From: Bugula neritina
Lineage: Eukaryota > Animalia > Bryozoa
NCBI GenBank assembly: GCA_964035545.1
Contig: CAXIUT010000200.1
Coordinates: forward strand, 1 to 15,814
DNA length: 15,814 nucleotides
Direction of reading: 5' to 3'
A program made the translations under genes and the position numbers. The notes under the pieces are model-generated. The model was not told where the DNA came from, did no database searches, and saw nothing but the letters and a program-made list of their open reading frames with translations. Of the stretch, positions 2,517-15,745 are shown one piece after another. Position 1 is the first letter of the stretch. The number at the start of each line of letters is the position of its first letter.

Positions 2517-2586
2517 TAATTTATAGAATCTTTTTATTTTATAATTTATTCTCATAAAAGTAAAACAAGAATATATTTTTATGAAA

Positions 2587-3488
2587 TCACTTAAAAAATT
2601 GCATCCAAAATTCATCTTTTATACAATCCTAGTTAGAATTAATAAGTCTACGTCTTATTTTTTATGCTTTTGATGATTTCTTTGATTTTTATTAGACCTT
2701 TTTCTTAATATTCATATTTTCTTCTTTTATATTTTATTATTTCGAAACACTTTAGTTCTAAGTCAATATATTTTAATATATTTTTTCTTATTTTGAGATT
2801 TATTTCTTTTATTATAGAACATTTTATGTGACATAATAAAGAAGCGTTCCTCTTCTATAGATTTCTTAGAGAGTATTATAGTTAATTCCAAAATCTTGAA
2901 ATAGAATTTAATTTTTTTGTCCAGAATTCGTATCTTTTAATATTTTTTAAACCTATTGATTACTTTTTCCTGATCTTACCATTTCCCAAAATACTGTATT
3001 ATAAAGGTTATTGATATGGCAATCAACTTGCCTCCATTTAAAATAATCTTTTAAACACTGCTAATTAGGATATACAACAACTCTACTATCAAAAGTTGGA
3101 ATATCTTTAAGTTCTATTTCAAAATATTTATTCCAATTAAAAACATAAGCTGATGTAAAAGCAGATACCACACAACTCAATATCTTATCTGTTCTTCTTG
3201 AAAAAAGAGTCGTATTTTTGTTAAAAACAAAAGAATATTCATCTGATTGACCATAAGCAAGGAATATTTAATTAAAATTTGTACAAACATACTCAGCAGC
3301 TGCATTCATTAGCTTGATCGCTCTTAGATCATTAGGTTTTTTAAATTCATGAAGCTGACAAAATTTTGTAAAACCTCTACCCTATATAAAACAAAATATA
3401 CATCGACTCTCACCACGATATAGGTTTGAAGAAGAGCACTTTGTTTTTATTCAAACTTTTTGACATACTCGAATTTAGAACAAGCCAT
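2587..3488 (-). CDS. THG1: tRNA(His) guanylyltransferase, 293 aa; one 20-nt intron 3382-3401
   Basis: Motifs [78 protein letters not shown]. The intron splits VD|GRGF. Confidence 0.96.
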
Positions 3489-3535
3489 ATAAAAGAAATT
3501 AATATTTATAATTTGATTTGTCTAGATCATTTCTA

Positions 3536-4594
3536 TCATTTCTAGGTGACCGTATGAGCTTGCAAATCATGGATAATATATTCATCTGATGTCAAATCAG
3601 GGTATTTTAGATCAGCTTATGGTGATCGAAAAGGTTATAAAGGACGAATACTCATATTACCTTGTACATGACAGAATAAAGTTGAAGTGACTCTCCATGT
3701 CGATTTCTTTTCCTTAAGACTCTTTTACACTTGAGACTCAACAATATCATTGTAGATTACTTCATGAAAACCAGCTTTCAAATGTCCTTCAGTCATCCAT
3801 TAAACCTGCTTACCAGTTTGAACCAAAAGATGATTTTCAGGAAGTTTCACCACAAATTTTTACCCTGTATGAAGCCAAGCATAAAGACCTGAAAAACGAC
3901 ACTTTCCATGGACTGTAAACAATGTAAAATCTCTATGAAAAGCTGTGATAACGTCTCCTTTATTTATTTTATTTAGATCAACTGCAGGAGGAGATAGATA
4001 AAGTTGACCATTTTATATGGTCCTTGAAAAAGCATTTAAGTCAAGTCCTAGTCCTATGGCTGTCATTTATGAGACAGTTAGTCCCGTTTTAAATAACTGA
4101 TTTCCCCAATCTTCCATAACATTGCCAAATTAAGGGTATTCTTTAGGTTTTAAGTTTTTTTGAGAGTTTAATATCCAATGATATCTCCAAGTAGGATCTG
4201 GAATAGGCATCTCTGGTGTTAGAGCAGTATGTGGTTACTTAAGTATTTTTTTATCCTCTTTATAAGGCAGAATTAGTTAATGATATTTAAACTTTAATCC
4301 AACTGGCATTTCATCAGGACTCCCACCCACATCAATATCTTTAATTCCTTTATCATATTGATTACTTCTGAGATCAAAGTAACTTTGCATTTGATCCATA
4401 AAAAGTTAATTTTTACTATGATCAACTCTTGGATCATTAGCATAAGCTAAACCATATACACGAAATAGTTCTGCAGCTCTTTAACAATCTTTTTACCAAC
4501 CTTAAGCTTTATTTAAATAATTTGTTAGATCAAGAGTTGGAACAGATATGTTAGAAAAATGATTTATTCTTTTTAGTAATAGCCTAGAAAACAT
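3536..4594 (-). CDS. 2OG-Fe(II) dioxygenase (isopenicillin N synthase-like), paralog A, 352 aa
   Basis: Intronless frame. HxD (FHRDF), distal His (AGFHEV), WRVTST 2OG-binding region, DPTWRYHW. Basic presequence-like N-terminus MFSRLLLKRINHFS. Confidence 0.88.
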
Positions 4595-4655: not shown

Positions 4656-5729
4656 TCATTTTTGGTGCTTTAGGATTTGTTGCTTCCTCTTATAATCTTC
4701 ATTTAATTCCTAAAGAAGATACTAATCTGCTGTTTTTGACTGATATTTAGATTCTTAGCTAATTGAAGAAAATCGATTAAATGGTTTAAGTTTCATATCT
4801 CCCTGGACATAACAAAACAAAGCAGAAGCTACTCTCCAATTTGATCGACCCATCTTCAAATTTCTTTTTACTTGAGCCTCAACATTTTTGTCATGAACTA
4901 CCTCGTGAAATCCTGCCTTAAGATAACCTCCAGTTAATATCTACAGCTGCTTACCTGCTTGAATAAGTAAATGCTTATCAGGCCAACTAACCTAAACCTT
5001 TTCTCCTGTTAACAACCATGCACTCAGTCCAGAAAATCTACATGGTGCATACGCAGTAAGTATTCCAAAATCTCTATGAAATCCTGTAATAACATCATTA
5101 ACTTTGTTTTTTGTTAAGTCAACAGCAGGAGGAGAAAGATAGTTAGATCCATTTACAAATGTTTGAGCTATTTCATTTGGTTCGAGATCAAGTCCTATGG
5201 AAAGCATCTAACTAGCTGTAACAGTAGTTTTGAAGGCTTCTTCACCCCAGCTATCCATCACAGTAGCAAAATCAGGAAAATCATCAGGTTTAATGTTTCT
5301 ATCAGAATGTAAGAGCCAGTGATATCTCCAAGTTGGATCTATCTTAGGCATCATAGGAGTAACAGATAAATTAGAACCTGATAGTGAACTTTTTTCTTCT
5401 TGATAGGCATCTCTAACTTAACTAAAACTCTATTTAAGTCCAACTTTTATATTGTCAATGCAAACATCTAAGTCTTTTTATCCATCTTCATATTGTCTAC
5501 TTCTCAAGGCAAAGTAACACTACATTTGATCTAAAAACCTTTAATTCTTCGAGAAATCTACCCTGGGATCAAATACATTAACAAAGCCAAATCTATGAAA
5601 ATGCTAAGCTATCTTATCACAATCTTCTTACCACCCAGGCAGTTTAGCAAGATATCGAGTCATATCCAGAGAAGTATTGTGACTAGAACTAAAAGTTCTC
5701 ACCATGTTTTTTAAAAGTTTTGATAGCAT
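4656..5729 (-). CDS. 2OG-Fe(II) dioxygenase, paralog B, 357 aa
   Basis: FHRDF, AGFHEV, WRVASA; colinear with paralogs A and C. N-terminus MLSKLLKNMVRTFSSS. Confidence 0.88.
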
Positions 5730-5800: not shown

Positions 5801-6844
5801 TCATTTTTTCACTGTTTCTTCAAGTTCTTTTTTATATAGATCTATACTAAGTATTTCTGGATATAGTTCAGCAGTTTAAGGATTATAGAATTTTTAATGA
5901 GGCTTGAGAATCACTTTATGATCAACTTCACAAAACATAGTAGAAGAAACTCTCCAAAAGTTACTATCTTTGTTTAAAGATTTTTTCTTTTACTTTAGCT
6001 CTTCAACCTATTTCGAATAAACAACTTCATGAAATCCTGCCTTAATATATCCTCCTGTCATCCACTATAATGTTTTACCTGCTTGAACTAAAAGGTGTCC
6101 TTCTGGAATTCTTACTGTAAATTTCTATCCTGAACTAACCCAAGCAACTAAAGCTGGATATCTGGATCTTCCGTGTATTGTCATCATGCAAAAGTCTCGA
6201 TGAAAAGCAGAAAGAATATCTCCTTTTTTTTATTTTTAAAGGTCAACTCCATTAGGAGAAAGAATACATTCTCCAAGAATACTTGAAAGGTAATAAGGTT
6301 ACAATCCCATTCCACGAGCTACCATTTAACTAATTGTCGCACATCCACTTTTCATACAGGTTCCCCATTCATTCATTGTATTTTATATTTCAGGAAAATC
6401 TTATGGAATAATGTTCTAAGAAAATCCCATTTTCCATTGAAATCGCCACTTAGGGTCTCTTGAAGGTATTATTGGTGTTTGAGATTGATGAGGATATACT
6501 AATTTTTACTTTTATTATTTATAAGATAAAAAGTTCTCATGATACTTGTGTAAAATTCCAACCTGAATTTCCCTTTAAGGATAATAATCCACAGTTTTAT
6601 TTCCTTATTAAAATTGCTAACTTCTTTTTTTAAAATAGTTTTCCATCAAATTAAGAAAACGATCACCTTGTTAAACTTTAACTCTTGGATCTTTAATGAT
6701 CACTAACCCATAATCTCTAAAACTTTTTGCAACTGATTAACAATCTTGTTCCCAATTACCTTTTTTAGTTAAAAAATTTGTTATATCGAGATGTGGGACT
6801 TTTATTTGGTTGAAATGATTCTTCAAAAGTTTCGATAAAAGCAT
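5801..6844 (-). CDS. 2OG-Fe(II) dioxygenase, paralog C, 347 aa
   Basis: DPKWRFQW, FHRDF, TIHGRSRYP, AGFHEV, WRVSST. Confidence 0.88.
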
Positions 6845-6899
6845 TTCCTGAATATATTTGAATTAATAATAAATATGACTAAATGTATTAATAAAGTAA

Positions 6900-7865
6900 T
6901 CAATCATCTAGGGGTATAGGGGTTGGGGTTGGGGTTGGGGTTGGGGTTGGGGTTGGGGTTGGGGTTGGGGTTGGGGTTGGGGTTGGGGTTGGGGATTTCT
7001 TCTAAGTATCATTTTCTATCTTTTAAATATTTTTGTAATCTTCTTCAAAATTAAACCCTTTTTCTTTCATCCACTGCTTCATTCCCGTTCTTTTAGGAAA
7101 TACTTTCTTTTCAAATTTATACTATTTCATTTAAATCTACTTTAAAGGTATTTCCTATTTTTTACTTTCTTCCTCTTCTTTCTTTTAAACAAATTTTATC
7201 TTCTTCTTTTATTGCTCCTCATGTCTGATTTATTCTTATGTAATCGGATTCAGCAATGAATCATCAATTTTTTATACTTGAAAATATAGAGGTCTTTCAA
7301 TTATTTGTTTTCCTTCTAGTTGAATTAAATCTTCTGCACTTTAAGGATTTGAAATAATGAAATATCCAGTTCCTTCATGTTTTTCATCATCATCTTCTCG
7401 TATGAAGTTAATTATATGCTTTACTTTTTAGTGATATTTATTAATTATTTCCTTTTTAGTACTATGATGACCTAAATTTTAAATATAAATTCTAACAAAA
7501 GAGGTCTTAGGATATTCAGCTAAATAAGATAAATTCTAGGCAATAGCTGCGACTATTTATTCTTCATTTTCTTCTTATTAAACATCATCATCTGAATAAT
7601 TACCTGGTCTTCCAAATTATTTCTCATATTAATCAAGTTCAGAACTAACTGAAGAAGAACGATCACTTTAGTGGGAATAAGACTCACTTGATGACGGGGG
7701 ATCGTCAGCTGAACCATTTTAATTATAGTAATTTCCATATTCATCATACCAACCTCCATAGCGGTCCAGATAGAATATAAAATTTGTATCTTTTATCGTA
7801 AATGATTGACCATCTGGTAAAGTGTTAAACTAATGAAATCTCTAAGGCTGATGTCCGGGGTTCAT
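6900..7865 (-). CDS. RRM-like protein with aromatic N-terminal motif (LDRYGGWYDEYGNYYNENG) and acidic linker; the 3' end runs into the telomeric tract (true end uncertain, possibly truncated at 6995)
   Basis: Open frame from ATG 7865 with RNP2-like RIYIENL and RNP1-like EGTGYFII. There is no TGA before the tract; the first TGA is at 6900-6902. Confidence 0.7.
6911..6994 (+). repeat. Internal (GGGGTT)n telomeric tract 1 (perfect 6919-6994, preceded by one degenerate unit GGGGTATA)
   Basis: Directly visible; same orientation as the right terminal telomere. Confidence 0.95.
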
Positions 7866-8022
7866 TTTTTAAAAGTAATTTAAATATATAATTAAGCTAA
7901 GCTTCAAAGAAGTAGTAGTTTATTCTAGGGTATTTTATTTTTGGATTTTTATTTTTATTTGAATGTATGGAGTTTGAAAGTTTGATCTAAGAGAGTCGGT
8001 TTTTGAATTTTTATATATTAAT

Positions 8023-10593
8023 ATGAAGTTTATATTAAAAGGAAAGGAGTTCATCTCAAAGAAGTTATAATAACTAGATATAGCAACAGATAATCTAGAT
8101 TTAATAAACTAGCAAATACCTGGCAGACTAAAATAGCCATTAAAGATCCTCCAAAACAATCAAATAGATCTAGATTCAAATTAATCATATTAAACTTACT
8201 TCAAAAACTATCCAAACCATCATATCTCACACTACTTATTATAAAAGTTTCAACTAGCGGTCTAAACTAACACAATAGCTCCTTAATATACATTACCAAC
8301 ATAAGACAAATAAATATTCATTCCTAATTCCAATAAAGAACTCTAAACAAAATCACTTCTCCTAAAATAAGTAGTAGATTAGTACGACGAAGGATACTAT
8401 AAAATAGATTAAGCCATCATTTGTCTAGCAGTCATACATTTCCATCATAAAAGAGGCACAGAAGTATAATATCGATATCCACAAACTAAAACAGTATAAG
8501 ATTTGTAAAATTTAATTGTACATCATGCTATGCCGGATTCATCTCATAACAAAATGGAAGATTATAATTTTTTTAACTTCTAAGCTGTAGTCAAAGGAAA
8601 GAAAAGAATGCTTTTCGGAGTATCATACTTCAAACAAATCAAAGTCACCGAATAAATGAAAGCGAATAATAGCTAAATCACCAGATCATACATGCAAAAA
8701 GCTTTAGCTGTCGTCAGTACCTTACCATTGTTCGGCTATCTTAAACTAAGATTATCAAGCACCATTAAAGTATTCTTTTCAGATTTCAATAATTATGAAC
8801 TCATCAACGCAGCCTTTAAGGATCTAAATAAAAATGTTAGCTAGTCTTGGCCAAAATTAGAAATGAATCAACTTTACATAGGCAGTGATCTTAAAGTCAT
8901 CATCAAGTTATTTGGAGTTCAATAATTCTACTAAATTTATAAAGCGATATTATATCAAAAAAGAGTTGTCATTTTTGCTCATTCAAGCTCATCAGCAAGT
9001 TCTTTCATTATTTCTCTTCTGACTTTGTTTCCAGGATTAAGTGCTTTTGGACTCTACTCTAAACCTATCAGTAAATACATGCAGTCTTTAAGATAGTATG
9101 CTTTGCCATTAAGAACCTTTAATAGTGATAACTTTATGGCCATGTCATTTCATATTCAAGATTTTCATTTACTTAGCAGATTTCAAAAGAGTAATAAAGG
9201 AAGTTTTTTACTAGGAACAACGAATCGTTTACTTAAAGAAGCTAATGATTATGGAATTTAGATGTTAATCAACCTCTAAAATTGCACTATCTAGAAAAGA
9301 AAACCAAGGAATCCTTGGTAGCCTTTATCAAAAATTTAAAAAGCTTTTATTTATCAGATAGATCAAATAATAAAAACATAAAAGAGTTTAGGATATTAAG
9401 GAAGTGAAGATATGATTAGAAATAAATTTCATAATTTTCTTAAATTGCAGCTAGTAGGAATAATAAAAGCAGGAACAAAATTAAAATAATGGGTTAGTAA
9501 GTGTAAAGAATATGAGCATAATAATAAAAATAAATCAAAAAATAAAGATAAGAATCAATAAAAGGCAAGATAGTATGAATTAATGAATGAATAAGGTTAA
9601 GAATAGGCACCTAAAAAAAATTAAGATTTTCCACCTCTTATCCCAAATGAAGTGTCTAATATTCCTTTTCCAGGTTTGTTATTAACTAAATCTTTTCCAT
9701 ATTTTCTTCAATTTCATAATGAAAAGATCCCTGATATCATTGATAACAAGATATTTCCCAGTCTAATGATCTAAAATTATTAATACTGTCTCAAATTGAA
9801 TGAATCCTAGTTCATTCGCTACAACTGGTATTAGAATAAACTTCTATTCGGAAAAGGCTAGCCTTCAGATTTCTAAGGCAAATAAATTAAATTTTATCCA
9901 GATAACAAATAAGAATTAAATGCTAAATATATCTATATTGGACATAACTTGAACAACAAGTTTTCTAAAAATGGTTTTTATTTAGATAAAAACGAACTCT
10001 ATGAAGGATAATACTAAAGTGGTATCAAATAAGGATATGGTAAACTAACTAACTCTATTCATAAATATATAGGATATTTTAAAAATGATTTATATGATGG
10101 AGAGGGGCAACTAATTACAGGACAAGATATCTATGTTGGATAATTCAAATAAGGCATGAAAAATGGGAATGGTAAAAATCAAGGAGAACTTGATTATGAT
10201 GGTTAATGGGCCAATAATAGACCAGAAGGAAGTGGAATCATGAAAATAAAAGGAGAATAATTTATGGGAATATTCAAAAAAGGAACAATAGATTAATAAA
10301 AATAGTATACTATCAAATATTAAAACGGATCACTTTATAAAGGTAAAATTAAAAATTTAAAACCAGAAGGAAAAGGCTATATTATAAATAAAGAAGGAAC
10401 TAAAAAAGTTTAGTATAAAGAGGGAGAAATAGTATATTAGGTTTTAGAAAATTAATATCCATAGAAAAATTAAAATAATTAAGTAAAAAATCAAGAGGTT
10501 GAATCGTAAAAAGCAGAGAAAAAAGAGGACGATATGATTGAAAAGAAATAATAAAAGAATTAACCATAATAGAAAGTATAATAGTAATCTTGA
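8023..10593 (+). CDS. AVL9-family (DENN-like) trafficking protein with C-terminal MORN repeats, 856 aa
   Basis: Intronless frame. AVL9 motifs FHHKRGTEVEYRYP, AMPDSSHN, LFGVSYFKQI, TRSYMQKAL, GTTNRL, YEGSEDMIR. MORN repeats at about 9930-10430 (YEGEYESGIKEGYG, YVGEFKEGMKNGNG, YDGEWANNRPEGSG). Confidence 0.88.
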
Positions 10594-10652: not shown

Positions 10653-10709
10653 GGGGTTGGGGTTGGGGTTGGGGTTGGGGTTGGGGTTGGGGTTGGGGTT
10701 GGGGTTGGG
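10653..10709 (+). repeat. Internal (GGGGTT)n telomeric tract 2
   Basis: 57-bp perfect array beginning 59 bp after the AVL9 stop codon. Confidence 0.95.
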
Positions 10710-11117
10710 ATTCATAATTTAAAATTTGACTTCAAATCAATATGCTCTTGATCCAAAAAACATAAAACTTGAACACCACAAAAATCTACAAAGTTGTCAA
10801 TCTTGATTAAGTTTTTTAAAGTACTTATCTCGTAGTAAAGAACTTATCCACATGTTTGTTGAACATTATAGTGAAGAAGATCAAATACCAGATAATATAA
10901 TAGGATTCAAATGAAAGAAGTGTGCTAATATTATGAACAAATATATGACTTAAAATATTTTGATAAATGTCCCATCCAATAAAATAAGCTAAATAAAAAT
11001 AAAGATGAATAATAAATGAAAACATATGGTAAAAACACTCTTATAGATATGATGATCAATCATTTCAATGGAAAATGCTCAAATCAACAAGAGATGGCTG
11101 CTTTTTTATCTAATTGA
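10710..11117 (+). pseudogene. Probable 3' fragment of a gene (…MKEVCEYYEQIYDLKYFDK…EMAAFLSN*), 5'-truncated or frame-disrupted
   Basis: Coding-like segments occur in different frames and end at a TGA near 11115. I could not build a clean single model. Confidence 0.3.
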
Positions 11118-11182
11118 TCATTTATTCCCTCATATTAAATATTTATCTTATTCATAAAGATTATTCTAAATAAAAAATAAAA

Positions 11183-11727
11183 TCAGTTATCAGGAACAAG
11201 TGATGGCTTCAACTTTGAACAATAGAAAGACTAGCGAAACAATTATGGTTTGTTATGTTTGGCAAGTGGTGTTTTATTTCTGTTTCTCAATCTAAATAAA
11301 TACTTAGCTTTTCTATTGATATGCTAATGTATTGATCCCATCTTATCAGATTGCAAATCAGAATGTTTTCTTTTATGTCGATTATCAATCACTATATAAC
11401 TTGCTATATCAAAATACTATTACTCACGTTCAAAGGTTTACCATTAACAGTCTGAAAAGTCTAACGAAAACTTTTATGTTAGAGAGGTAATATCTCAAGC
11501 ATTTATTTCTTTTTTGGCAAAGAAATTGAATTTTTTTCAATAATTGGTTTCTTTGGAAGTACTTTTGAAAAATCATGGAGAAAGTTTGTTTGTTACTTTA
11601 GTTAATCATCTATTTTTGATATTTCGAAAAGTGATTACTGAGCTTGTAGTTAGTTATTGCTTTCTGGGTTATGATATTGGTTTTATTTAAGAACTTTTTG
11701 AAGTTGGAAACTGTGAATTTTGTTCAT
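11183..11727 (-). CDS. Hypothetical protein, 174 aa or longer; 20-nt intron 11404-11423
   Basis: Removing GTAATAGTATTTTGATATAG joins two open frames to the TGA at 11183. The frame stays open upstream to about 12020 without an ATG, so the start is uncertain. Confidence 0.55.
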
Positions 11728-12044
11728 TAATAATAAAACTAAATTTATCAATGAATAAACCTGATAATAAAATTATTAAATAAACAAATCAAAAGAAAAA
11801 TAACTTTAAAATAAGTTTAAGCTTTTTTTTATTGTTTTATTAAAAGTTTATAAAGAAGTTTCATTTTAGAAATAAAACTTCAAAAGGAGATATTCTTGTT
11901 AAGTTTCATCTTTTTTAAAAGTCTAAATATCGATATAAAAAGAAAAGAGATATTACTTTTTGTTATGTTTCTGATCATATCTGACCGTAAAGACTATTAA
12001 GTGAGACCTTAACAGTAATTCTCAGATATAATAATTTAACTCTT

Positions 12045-13201
12045 ATGCACAAACTTCAAATAACCATAGTTCCAAAGTAAGTAGGCTAACTTTACGACTA
12101 AATCCTAAATAATGTCCTTGAAGACGTCTGCAATCCAACCAAATAAATTCCAATAGCAAGTCTTCCCTAAATGATTCCTCATACATACAATCCAAGATAT
12201 AATATTTATCAAGGCCAATGCTACCAGCAATATTCTCCCAACTTGTGTGGCTATCACGCTTCCTTTAATACTCTTTGTTTTCTCAATTTTATCAAAGGAG
12301 GCACAACTAACTACAATATCCTCAGTGGATCTTCTTTCTGGAGATTCAAACAAAAAGTTTAATCCTTTTTGTTTAAAGTTAAAAAGTACTATAATCGTGG
12401 ATAAGAATGGCCTTGGAGATAAGAAGATATTAAGTATGGAGATTTTTAAAGAACATACAATAAATTTTGTCTTTAAAAATTCTAAGAATTTTAAATCTAT
12501 AGAAAGCATGATCAGTTCTAACTAAAATCCTTTACTTGGGAATTTCAATACTAAAATCTTTTGGTCTCAGACTAAAAAAGAAAAGAACTAAACCGACTTA
12601 TTGAATATTTTAAAAAATATAAAAGCCAAAAACCTTTAGTAATTAGCTTTATGTTGGCAATAACAAATCATTGGATGTGTTTAAATGCAGTAAAAGTTGG
12701 AAATTAAACCCAATATTGGTTTTTCGATTCTTTCAACAGACATATTTTAGATCTTGATAATGATCAGATCCATAAACTAGTTTAAGAATTAAATCAATAA
12801 AGAATCAAATACAAAGGTAAATAGTTCACATAATTCTTCAAAAAAATATATCTGTATGCTACAAAGATACACAAATCAGCTTAAAGTTGATCGTTGATTG
12901 TCTAGAAGGAAAAAATACCATCGATTAGTACACCTACAATCAAATATTTAATATTTTTGCAAATCGTCTTTAAGAATACTGGGAAAAAGATCACAAGATG
13001 TATGTCAATACCATAAAGTAATATTGGTATAATATAACATCTTTCTTCAAAAGACCTGTTCAGCATGATCTCTTTACAGCTCATAACCTGAAGAGGTTTA
13101 AAAAAATGATTTAAACTATTCAAATGGTTAAATCTCACTCTGAAGAAGGTAAAAGACTCTATCAAATGGTTAAAAAATATGAAGTCATATCATGTATTTG
13201 A
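12045..13201 (+). CDS. Putative papain-fold cysteine peptidase (Josephin-like motif order), about 375-385 aa
   Basis: QQYSPNLCGYHASFN … NHWMCL … WFFDSFN (Q, C, H, D). A frame change near 12850 is explained by a 26-nt GT-AG intron (12854-12879) or a 1-nt deletion. Confidence 0.65.
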
Positions 13202-13328
13202 AATATTGAGAATATGATCGTTTAATCTTTATAATTATTATCTATATTTAACAAATAATACAAGTAAATTAATGAATAAACAAACATAAAATCGGGAATG
13301 GTTAGGATTATGGGGGAATCAAAAGAAC

Positions 13329-15307
13329 CTTTATATACTTATACTTACGCTTTTATAAATCATAGATTACTCTGAAATTAAGAAGAATTTACTCTCACTT
13401 AGTCATTAAATTTTAACCTCTATATTTATACAATAATTACATTATTAAAAAACTAAAACCTTTTTTCGATTTAAGCTTACTTCTGAATAATAAAACCTTT
13501 AACATTTCTAAGTTGCTCTACTTTTTACCCCTAAATAACATATTGTTGACACTGTATTATAAAAATTAAACTTCTTTTTATATTTTCAATCAAACCCTAA
13601 ATAAAATAAATGTTGCTTCTAAATTAATAAGTAAAAACTCTAAAGTAATTCAAATATTACATCTATGTTTAATAATATTTAAACCCTTGATCAAGATATC
13701 TTTTACGGCTAACTCACAGTATTTTAACACTAAATGAATTTATTAATACTTCTTTATCAATTTTTAATAACCATGGCCTAGTTGAAAAAATAATCTTATC
13801 ATATTTTTTGTACTCTATAATATTCTTGTTAAAACGCCTTATTCAAATAATTATAACACTTATTTTCAATAAACATACTTCTGAAATAAGAAATTAAAAC
13901 TCTGAATAAGAAAAAGATGAACTCCTTTAATACTCAAGTAAATACCCTTAAATCAAAGCCCTTTATACGTCTAAAATAGACTTTAATATACTCTAAGTTT
14001 CATAAAAAATAAACCTCTGAATTTGTTAATTTAAACTCTACATATTCAAATGAATACGCCTTCATCATTTAATCAATACACTAAGTTCTAGAAATTTTTA
14101 CTTCTATATTGAACAAAAATCAACTCTAAGGTTATTTTTAAAATATACTTCTGATATTAAAACTTTTATACTCTTCATCATTATAAAATTACCACTATTT
14201 TTCCTCGTAAATACCCTAAATAAGTTCAAAATTAACATGTTTCTTAATGATTCAAGAATTCTTTATCTATATAAAAATACCAATGAGTTCAATAGTAATT
14301 TACCCTATTTTTAATTGAAAAAACTTCTTAATTAAACATTAATAACTCTTAATTATCGATGTTCTACGCCTAAATTAAAAAATTTTTACACTAAATTTTT
14401 TCAAATATAAACTAAATTTTATCTGATTTACCCTTTTATTTGAATCAATTTTACTTCATCTATGGAGATCAATGGATACACTAAAACAAAATTGACTGTA
14501 CGCCTTATTTAGACGAAATATTACCCTGAAATGACTAAAATCACACATCTTATTTCATCAATAAATACTCTTATATTTGTAAAGAAAAACCTCTGTATTT
14601 ACTAACTTTAACTCTTAAGTATTTAGATCATACATTTTCTATATAACAAAGTTGATACTCTGAATAACAAACAAATTACCTCTAAATAATAGTTTTAGAA
14701 CTCTAAATTGAATCTTAAAATACGCCTAAATTATCAGATAAATACACTTAATATCACTATGTGTACAACTAATTTATGAGTCAATTACTCTTCATTAGAA
14801 AATTATACAACTAAAATAGCTTTATTTATTACTCTGTATTCTTAAAATTAAACTTCTTTCATCATTTAGAAAATACCCTTTATTTTTGAAAATCAACTTC
14901 TAAATAATCTTAAATTTAGCCCTTTATAAAGAATCTTTAACTTCTAAATTACTATTAAATAAACCCTTGATTAATTATCAAAAATACAACTGAATTAACA
15001 ATAATCAACTCTTAGTATTATGATTAATACTGCTAAAAAATATTTATTTAATACACTTTATAGTTATTTTTTAATACTTCTAGATTAAGATTAAAAAACG
15101 CTATTTGAAGATAATATTACATCTTTATTAGAAGTTTAATACTCTATATTGAAAGATTAAAACCCCTTTTTCAAAATAAATTTTACACTTCATTATTTAT
15201 TAAAAACATCATCTATTTATATTAGATATACCATGTTATTCTACAATTTTAAAAATAAATACTCTTTATTGTGATGACTATACGATGCTGATTAGAATTA
15301 GAAGAAC
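13329..15307 (-). other. Array of about 86 tiny spliceosomal-type introns, period about 21-22 bp
   Basis: On the + strand the motif AC-N(1-2)-CT recurs every ~22 bp (AG-N(1-2)-GT on the - strand). Units are AT-rich, mutually dissimilar, and the same size as introns in THG1 and the C2 gene. Confidence 0.9.
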
Positions 15308-15366
15308 GTGAGACCCAAAGAAACGGAGACCAAAACCAAAAGAGTCAATAGTTTATAAATCGACAT
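13395..15366 (-). CDS. Hyper-fragmented gene for a small secreted 4-Cys protein (77 aa or more), about 83 introns up to the first possible stop, mostly 1-2 nt exons
   Basis: Exon 1 (15366-15308) encodes a signal-peptide-like sequence. Serial removal of GT(GC)…AG units, nearly all 19-23 nt, yields an open, protein-like frame. Two junctions are non-canonical and two introns are double length. The 3' end is ambiguous (TGA at 13395-13397, or a longer form). Confidence 0.82.
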
Positions 15367-15428
15367 TAAAAAGAAAGATAAAATGATATAAAAATAATGA
15401 TTTAAATATAAACTGTATATCTTATTTT

Positions 15429-15614
15429 ATGGGATTTAGATTTATTTTAGAGCAGTATAATCAATTTCAAATCATCAAAAGCACCTCTATTTAAGAGATT
15501 TCATAATTAAACTGTCTAAGTATCAAATTACTGAGAACAAAAATAATCTCTATTGATTTTTATCATTAACTTATTGCTTTAGAAGTGTTGTCACATTTCA
15601 TCTATCATGTATGA
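15429..15614 (+). CDS. Possible short ORF, 61 aa
   Basis: ATG-to-TGA frame only. With a single stop codon in this code, such ORFs arise by chance. Confidence 0.15.
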
Positions 15615-15745
15615 CATACAAATAACCCTCAAAATAAATTAACTCTATTAATAAAAGACAATTTATTCGACAAAAAATTAATTCTATTGATATTTAATTT
15701 CCTTTTTTGAATAGATATCTCTAATATTTCAATATAGTTTATTTA

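Follow-up and report, generated by a model that had tools for sequence, protein, structure and literature searches.

The DNA considered here, called the window, is the entire 15,814-nucleotide (nt) contig CAXIUT010000200.1 (C209 below) of the genome assembly GCA_964035545.1, which is filed under the bryozoan Bugula neritina. On its minus strand, between an ATG at 15366 and position 13329, lies an array of 86 consecutive removable units, most of them 20 or 21 nt long and separated for the most part by exons of only one or two nt. The locus is likely to be a protein-coding gene of a ciliate that reads UAA and UAG as Glu, a gene whose codons are split by minimal introns and which belongs to a family encoding secreted peptides. 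A gene of this build had been proposed from the letters alone (the sequence-only reading), and comparison with related arrays now establishes the anatomy of such genes, selection on their splice sites and unit lengths, a codon signature in their exons and the placement of their stop.

Anatomy of the array

The minus strand was read directly and then parsed by dynamic programming, resulting in a final curated model. Among its 86 units, 82 have GT..AG termini, two GC..AG, one TA..AG and one AA..AG, so that a GT or GC is paired with an AG in 84/86. Forty-four units measure 20 nt, 25 measure 21 nt, 11 measure 22 nt and three measure 19 nt, with one unit each of 23, 36 and 37 nt. The sequence-only reading had described about 86 GT..AG units of about 20 nt; the number stands, and 84/86 units do fall between 19 and 23 nt, but two units lack the GT (14409–14391 and 14264–14243) and two others (14303–14267 and 13813–13778) are 36–37 nt long. 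Position +3 of the units is A in 49/84 and T in 32/84, the tail is T-rich, and A is found at −6 in 61/84 and at −7 in 51/84. The A at −6 resembles a branch point and may be used as one.

The exons measure 59, 4, 1, 9 and 5 nt and then alternate almost purely between 1 and 2 nt, the exceptions being exons of 5, 5, 6, 6, 4, 19 and 5 nt; every junction in the window retains at least 1 nt, without any zero-length exon. Introns within the coding sequence (CDS) are in phase 0 (40), phase 1 (41) and, once, phase 2. The CDS comes to exactly 234 nt over 1,972 bp, as had been estimated, and exons no longer than 19 nt account for 175 of these 234 nt. Once joined, the exons encode a 77-amino-acid product, MSIYKLLTLLVLVSVSLGLTIKEHDDWNQSIEEEIICKKNKNGYEVCKDKHVKKCKNGKCSHESDKEWKEVLVFEEE, followed by an in-frame TGA; the peptide deduced earlier is reproduced over these 77 residues with the exception of one (...CKDKH..., not ...CKVKH...). 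The N-terminus encoded by exon 1, MSIYKLLTLLVLVSVSLGL, is hydrophobic and signal-peptide-like (judged by eye, no predictor), and the exon nucleotides have about twice the G+C content of the intron interiors (0.28 vs 0.14).

Chance controls and continuity of the DNA

The array proper (15212–13329) has 80 strict introns, a longest unbroken chain of 26 and 70 exons of at most 2 nt; it was compared with 300 dinucleotide shuffles, with 58 other segments of the contig and with its own opposite strand. The shuffles gave 40±2.6 introns, 3.9±1.9 short exons (maximum 9) and a chain of 2.3 (maximum 5), the other segments had at most 5 short exons, and the opposite strand had 9 introns and 0 short exons. 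The shuffled control that the sequence-only reading had named as a possible refutation is thus passed, as no shuffle exceeds 9 short exons or a chain of 5. Tandem Repeats Finder, run over 13329–15212, detects no array, and the units are not copies of each other. Contigs from three public runs, belonging to two studies, span the array contiguously and without joints, and this independent cover indicates that the array DNA is real and not an assembly artefact.

Related arrays in the same assembly

A scan for other AG-N(1-2)-GT arrays, which the sequence-only reading had suggested, was carried out as a pattern search of the assembly and located more of them on contigs C147, C274, C285 and C305. 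Contig C305 carries two tandem paralogues, C1 and C2, which have 75–77 introns apiece (the count varies with the reading of the first exon) and a signal peptide related to that of the window and starting MSTIKLAILVLLL... The two span 2571-4450 and 6407-8290 (locus L005) and contain no damaged unit. When C1 was parsed blind to frame at three exon-cost settings, one setting produced an open reading frame (ORF) that runs from the ATG as far as the conserved TGA, while the other two broke frame. C1 is read through into the last exon, where the conserved TGA lies; C2 ends sooner, at GGT TGA.

Contig C274 holds two inverted genes, A and B, each with a 59-nt first exon followed by exons of 4 nt, 1 nt ('A') and 9 nt, as in the window; this 59/4/1/9 layout is kept while the sequences differ. 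The spliced start reads T-I-K-E-H in the window and S-L-K-A-H in C274 A/B, the latter by a hand splice that takes a 22-nt rather than a 25-nt third intron, and alternative AGs leave the frame of the A/B parse ambiguous. The terminal exons share a motif that appears as CATAATCCTAACC in the window, CACAATCCTAACC in C274 A/B and CATAATTCTAACC in C305 C1/C2, and which may be a signal in the 3′ untranslated region (UTR) or, in another frame, a hydrophobic C-terminal tail (SFDSPIILTIP in the window). In the form CA(C/T)AAT(C/T)CTAA(C/T)C, it lies just 3′ of arrays across the family, including the window (13300-13312, minus strand) and loci L003, L005, L021, L024 and L096.

The array on contig C285 (locus L002, 5817-6400) is of another kind. 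It lies downstream of a trypsin-like protease/TPR ORF and consists of 13 copies of a true 43-nt cassette, [20-nt intron][2 nt][20-nt intron][1 nt], in which the introns hardly vary and the exon nucleotides, which spell FLYSDGKYDGNAD, vary widely. This pattern suggests that the C285 array is young, and that arrays grow by duplicating one-codon cassettes. On the minus strand of contig C147 (locus L004, reverse-complement positions 4687-5165) what seems to be a different and larger gene has within it a shorter array, made up of about 18 introns and of exons that measure 1–8 nt. Runs of micro-exons are thus not limited to the secreted-peptide family.

Arrays in environmental DNA

JGI metagenomes were scanned for five consecutive units, and the figures refer to the matches listed (loci L011-L130, at least 120 contigs, 800 kb). 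They comprise at least 191 arrays with at least 7,514 introns, from at least 17 datasets, and single arrays reach 200 introns. Introns of 20 nt (57%) and 21 nt (35%) predominate, and the exons in the sample include 3,560 of one nt and 3,476 of two nt. Their consensus, GTA...A(−6)...AG, was drawn from 6,667 of these introns, of which 98% have T at position 2, 88% have A at +3, 94% have A at −6 and 100% end in AG. Intron length varies with phase: phase-1 introns are 20 nt long in 2,451 cases vs 21 nt in 742, and phase-0 introns in 1,420 vs 1,716.

Signal-peptide-like exons lie upstream of the environmental arrays, and arrays that close a gene are followed by the 3′ motif of the family; AATCCTAA occurs within 100 nt downstream of 29/110 complete arrays. 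Ala, Cys (9%), Gly, Thr, Ser and Asn are abundant in the peptides that these arrays encode. From these sequences, the array genes are predicted to form a widespread family encoding small, secreted, fast-evolving and often cysteine-rich peptides. A 29-mer from exon 1 of the window has no match in the JGI metagenomes, and exact protein look-up for the variant contigs found nothing on record.

Selection on splice sites

The C305 paralogues C1 and C2 were aligned unit for unit, and 68 homologous units were compared. Their intron interiors differ at 208/1169 sites (17.8%), with a further 41 gap columns, whereas at the splice dinucleotides all 272/272 positions agree (at the interior rate, P≈7e-24). 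Exon lengths are equal in 66/68, and every intron measures 20–25 nt. Allele pairs from the metagenomes behave in the same manner: interiors differ at 257/4660 sites (5.5%) and splice-site positions at 1/1124, the latter summed over six non-redundant pairs. Judged by these substitution patterns, splice sites and unit lengths are under selection in the family. This test of purifying selection on the termini applies to family members, not to the window copy.

Evidence for translation

If the spacers between introns are pieces of codons, a 1-nt exon should be linked to the 2-nt exon with which it shares a codon. With duplicate environmental arrays removed, the 1-nt exon shows strong coupling to the 2-nt exon after it (chi-square 632, 45 d.f., P=1e-104, 0.168 bit of mutual information) and only weak coupling to the one before it (chi-square 149, 0.048 bit). 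The resulting 1+2 triplets have the pattern of codon usage, with a ciliate-like avoidance of rare codons: TGG, TGC, CAA, GGA and AAR are enriched, and AGG, CGN, ACG and GGG depleted. In 110 complete arrays, composition would lead to 30 in-frame TGA, and 3 internal ones are found (P=5e-10); a further 26 in-frame TGA lie exactly three exons before the end of the array, split as T|GA. TGC, TAA and out-of-frame TGA are evenly spread along the same arrays. Between C1 and C2, 4/4 Cys are kept (P=0.03) while 19/34 residues differ. The claim of the sequence-only reading that the spacers join into codons in frame with a signal-peptide exon is therefore backed by comparative evidence, not by RNA, and on such evidence the coding and splicing reading appears well supported for the family.

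The exon nucleotides change faster than the introns that surround them. Micro-exon nucleotides differ at 36% between C1 and C2, vs 18% for intron interiors (P=6e-5), and at 10% vs 5.5% between metagenome alleles (P=0.001). In the C285 cassette, departures from the consensus amount to 3/260 and 7/220 positions in the introns and to 16/39 in the exon nucleotides (41%, Fisher P=1e-13). The fast exon change can be read as the outcome of diversifying selection acting on secreted peptides whose Cys framework is kept, like that of conotoxins; a targeted mutational process may also be its cause.

Host organism and genetic code

Contig C209 has a G+C content of about 28% and ends in telomere repeats on both sides, CCCCAA on the left and GGGGTT on the right; this is the form that somatic chromosomes take. 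HSP70 genes on other small contigs of the assembly contain many in-frame TAA/TAG and zero TGA. In the translation of the C87 HSP70, read by eye, TAA/TAG fall inside the motifs TKMK-x-TAE, GG-x-D-D and VI-x-NAEG, at positions that we take, from reading the translation and without computation, to be Glu or Asp. A computed comparison with the C95 HSP70 paralogue places only 3 E and 3 D at 16 TAA/TAG positions. The organism is treated as a ciliate with a peritrich-type code, in which UAA/UAG specify Glu and UGA is the sole stop, and the in-frame TAA/TAG of the C87 motifs support this code as the sequence-only reading had assumed it. An HSP70 on contig C291 gives a profile match broken by a gap of about 20 nt, at which no GT..AG intron could be pinned down. 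Ordinary introns were also sought by joining ORFs: frame-restoring GT..AG candidates number 15 at 20 nt vs 1 at 21 nt, in a harvest that is noisy with one stop codon and has equal or larger counts at 34 and 38 nt.

The ciliate DNA appears to have been carried along when a larger genome was assembled, since contigs of the 216-Mb assembly such as the one labelled C1 (not the paralogue of that name), which exceeds 35 Mb, look quite different; these large contigs entered the analysis only as pattern hits. Run X3, which has another organism label and comes from another study, contains near-identical sequence over window positions 10710-15740, indicating that the ciliate accompanies two samples with different labels. 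A short way upstream of the ATG, near 15385–15394, several contigs of X1 and X2 part from the window.

The window also contains two internal GGGGTT tracts on the plus strand (6923-6994 and 10657-10704), with the polarity of the right end, and the contig thus resembles three segments that each close with a right-hand telomere. Contigs C10, C11, C14 and C15 have the same layout of internal tracts, and an X1 contig seems to continue across the tract at 10657–10704. They may mark alternative sites of fragmentation, be genuine interstitial tracts or result from the assembly.

Integrity of the window copy

The features of the window copy are collected in Table 1. Its irregular block is parsed in the one way in which the 1+2 frame runs unbroken from the array on one side to that on the other. 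A 366-codon TGA-free frame antisense to the array (window 13218-14315, plus strand) was considered and rejected as a gene: it is a by-product of composition, arising because only TGA stops translation and the strand is C-rich and G-poor, and it is unsuitable as a reference for coding sequence.

Table 1. Features of the micro-exon array, in window coordinates
Feature	Coordinates	Strand	Basis	Details
Exon 1, 59 nt	15308..15366	-	direct read, parse	ATG and hydrophobic signal-peptide-like N-terminus MSIYKLLTLLVLVSVSLGL(T)
5′ mini-exon block	15208..15307	-		intron of 20 nt, CATC, intron of 20 nt, A, intron of 22 nt, AATAACATG, intron of 19 nt, ATGAT
Array part 1	14412..15207	-	parse	36 canonical units (35 GT..AG and GC..AG 14920–14900); exons strictly 1,2,1,2 nt plus two 5-nt exons; encodes ...DDWNQSIEEEIICKKNKNGYE(V)
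Degenerate unit 1	14391..14409	-	parse	19 nt, TA..AG, 5′ GT missing
Irregular block	14237..14304	-	inferred	exon G, 37-nt GT..AG intron 14303–14267, exon AT, 22-nt AA..AG unit 14264–14243, exon AAACAT
Array part 2	13814..14236	-	parse	19 canonical GT..AG units; encodes VKKCKNGKC...
36-nt GT..AG intron	13778..13813	-		looks like two fused units; then 6-nt exon GCCATG (13777–13772)
Array part 3	13398..13771	-	parse	canonical units including GC..AG 13616–13597; longer exons are the 4-nt AAAT and a 19-nt exon (13459–13441); encodes ...SHESDKEWKEVLVFEEE
In-frame TGA	13395..13397	-	curated model	closes the 77-codon reading
Three further introns	13329..13392	-		GT..AG, 20–21 nt, with 1-nt exons A and C between; 3′ UTR under the 77-codon reading
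Start of terminal exon	13300..13328	-		family motif CATAATCCTAACC (13312–13300); related motifs after other arrays

Several results weigh against reading the window as an intact spliced gene, or against the coding reading more generally. The full-length product requires the removal of two non-GT units and of two introns of 36–37 nt. Under strict GT/GC..AG rules the unit 14409–14391 is retained, the frame reads GTT TAT ATT TGA, and translation stops after codon 48 (...GYEVYI*). The X1/X3 allele carries a GT>AT change at 13857, in array part 2, and the array diverges by about 6% between strains vs about 1% in the neighbouring gene. Codon-usage log-odds are of little help as the exon stream of the window is too short, two of the three frames being tied, and a flexible ORF-constrained parse reaches all phases at similar cost; an open frame in the window thus proves little by itself, and the full-length ORF is unproven from the window alone. 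Between C1 and C2, substitutions are spread evenly over the codon positions (13/12/11), unlike the usual outcome of purifying selection.

Further points concern the supporting record. Searches of public runs with the window sequence found it only in DNA-like runs and in no RNA run; one presumed RNA run compared with the window gave no match, which is evidence neither for nor against expression. A protein database search with a 50-amino-acid spliced environmental precursor returned no candidate, a blank that says little because UAA/UAG codons break standard ORF calling. A tblastn search of 79 spliced peptides against all 0.85 Mb fetched found no contiguous, intron-poor paralogue. For the window copy the coding and splicing reading is plausible but unproven: this copy either is spliced at non-canonical sites or is a recently damaged member of the family.

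The second of these options is the strongest rival explanation, although a somewhat unlikely one. It holds that the window copy is decaying or dead, that loss of the GT at 14409 truncates the product to 48 amino acids and that the remainder is a drifting remnant; the architecture, real and functional elsewhere in the family, would be untouched by it. The halt of the strict parse at codon 49, the two non-GT units, the two units of 36–37 nt that look fused, the second splice-site lesion at 13857 in the X1/X3 allele and the raised divergence of the array between strains are all consistent with decay, and by contrast C305 C1/C2 are without any broken unit in 2×77. Against this, about 45 units downstream of the lesions retain GT..AG, their length and the 1/2 alternation, and the 1+2 frame continues across each lesion to an in-frame TGA at the place typical of the family. 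In addition, ten of the ten displayed allele indels lie within intron interiors and leave lengths of 19–23 nt, and the non-canonical 5′ sites are possibly tolerated or are assembly or allele variants.

Proposed mechanism and alternative explanations

In the reading preferred here, that of a ciliate gene with codons split by minimal introns, nearly every codon after the signal-peptide exon would be cut twice, in phase 1 and in phase 0, by minimal spliceosomal-type introns of 19–23 nt with a 5′ GTA, an A at −6 and a terminal AG. As the chromosome is telomere-capped and no excised form of the DNA is seen, removal of the units, if any, takes place at the RNA level. A spliceosome cannot occupy two introns that lie 1 nt apart at the same time, and removal would thus be sequential. 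The pre-mRNA would be spliced intron by intron, most simply 5′→3′ during transcription, so that each 5′ splice site meets an upstream exon that is already assembled; this would resemble the stepwise removal of recursive splicing, with 1–2 nt retained per step. The 234-nt CDS would then be translated with each 1-nt exon joined to the next 2-nt exon, ending at the TGA 13397–13395, and three further introns and the conserved motif would follow in the 3′ UTR. That the RNA is actually spliced, and in this order, and that the peptides are secreted and functional, we infer from the family comparisons.

A design in the style of nonsense-mediated decay was considered and set aside, as only about 9% of 21-nt introns would, if retained, yield an in-frame TGA; surveillance of retained introns of the Paramecium type is not obviously built into the arrays. 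Nothing was found in support of a splicing timer or sensor, or of a combinatorial generator of peptide variants, the two functions proposed by the sequence-only reading.

A further proposal, tentative and in our view rather doubtful, is that this ciliate lineage builds and diversifies secreted peptides codon by codon, through cassette duplication and ordered, processive splicing. A cassette [intron][1 nt][intron][2 nt] would duplicate in tandem, as exemplified by C285 with its 13 copies, among which 41% of the exon nucleotides have changed and the introns are still 97–99% alike. Turnover of the three coding nucleotides would outpace that of the introns around them, and the spliceosome would cope with exons shorter than its own exon-binding footprint.

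It is improbable that the array is instead a spliced non-coding host transcript, in which the introns of about 20 nt or the act of splicing are the product and the spacers are unconstrained filler. Such a transcript would accommodate spacers that change faster than introns (36% vs 18%, 10% vs 5.5% and 41% vs 1–3%) as well as the even spread of C1/C2 substitutions over the three 'codon' positions, and SNHG14 is a precedent for host genes with tandem introns (PMC11608373). Filler would, however, not couple a 1-nt spacer to the next 2-nt spacer across an intron, avoid TGA in one frame and then fix a TGA near the 3′ end, keep Cys codons, or lie in frame behind a conserved signal-peptide exon; moreover, the window introns share no sequence, so that no repeated small RNA would result.

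Ciliates are known to excise short sequences from their DNA. That the units are cut from DNA by a programmed elimination resembling that of internal eliminated sequences (IES), the contigs being germline or otherwise unprocessed DNA, is very improbable, even though telomere repeats are present at only 1/120 of the environmental loci listed: the window contig is capped at both ends and has the somatic form, DNA contigs of three runs span the array with no joined form among them, and the unit boundaries are of the GT..AG type, not the TA type, with a branch-like A standing at −6 and lengths like those of tiny ciliate introns. Chance in AT-rich DNA, a degenerate satellite or an assembly artefact can be dismissed, for while shuffles still give about 40 loose 'introns' per 1.9 kb, the short exons and chain of the array lie far outside the controls, its units show no repeat similarity, independent runs carry the sequence, and arrays recur on the many metagenome contigs described above.

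Comparison with known systems

Introns of 18–21 nt are found in the nucleomorphs of chlorarachniophytes. Tiny introns are also known from ciliates, with about 25 nt in Paramecium, about 15 nt in Stentor and Blepharisma, and further examples in Nyctotherus (PMC2633312, PMC9505925, PMC13685798), and three peritrichs are reported to have narrow intron length distributions (PMC13685798). Like these, the units of the array have GT..AG termini and a very narrow range of lengths, consistent with recognition of the intron as a unit; unlike these, which are scattered among normal exons, they follow one another directly. Neither arrays nor 1–2-nt exons are present in the three ciliate-intron reports cited. 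Isolated 1-nt exons have been described in Arabidopsis (PMC4674806), Fusarium CYP621A (PMC12940212) and placozoan cox1 (PMC5436844). These prove that a single-nt exon can be spliced correctly, but they occur singly in ordinary genes, whereas here tens to about 100 stand back to back per gene.

The micro-exon genes (MEGs) of Schistosoma mansoni have symmetric exons of 3–81 bp, each of which can be left out without loss of frame, and introns as long as 5 kb (PMC10526429). The window family resembles them in its putative secreted products with a signal peptide, in a CDS made mostly of micro-exons, in fast evolution and in being lineage-restricted (PMC10526429). The differences are considerable: exons in the window are of 1 and 2 nt, so that a codon needs a pair of them, introns are of about 20 nt with two per codon, and nothing in the window family suggests exon skipping. 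The resemblance is thus loose and does not amount to membership of the MEGs.

Two other systems share single aspects with the array. Recursive splicing, known from Drosophila Ubx and from long vertebrate introns, uses zero-length exons and serves to remove one long intron. In both situations the 3′ splice site almost abuts the next 5′ splice site and stepwise 5′→3′ removal is natural; unlike recursive splicing, each step in the array would leave 1 or 2 coding nt, and the introns are minimal. Conotoxin-type precursors combine a conserved signal sequence with a hypervariable mature peptide in genes of few ordinary exons. The array genes are similar in their conserved signal peptide and flanks, in a Cys framework that is kept and in coding nucleotides that diverge faster than introns, but the organism is unrelated. 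The array further differs from ciliate IES, as it lies on a telomere-capped contig and has GT..AG rather than TA-type boundaries, and from tandem-repeat satellites, as its units are unrelated; even the true 43-nt repeat of C285 varies mainly in its three exon nucleotides.

No published array of 1–2-nt exons was found in the full-text literature, a search in which most subscription journals fell outside the scope and which leaves an earlier description possible. This agrees with the statement of the sequence-only reading that no such gene had been described, although the gene is no one-off but belongs to a widespread family.

Significance

If the arrays are spliced as predicted, 1 nt would be the lower limit of exon size, and a limit used routinely, thousands of times. 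They provide a natural test of how intron-defined spliceosomes choose their sites when introns lie 1–2 nt apart, and they bear on the question of whether an order of splicing or co-transcriptional processing is needed. They also offer a concrete case of intron gain through cassette duplication, and a family of secreted peptides whose coding nucleotides evolve faster than the flanking introns. Arrays of this kind escape standard gene finders and spliced aligners, and a class of small secreted proteins is thus probably missing from ciliate annotations and metagenome catalogues. Should the codon-by-codon reading be true, genes of this family would grow and become hypervariable in a way that is new, and the spliceosome would be working in a regime that is new as well.

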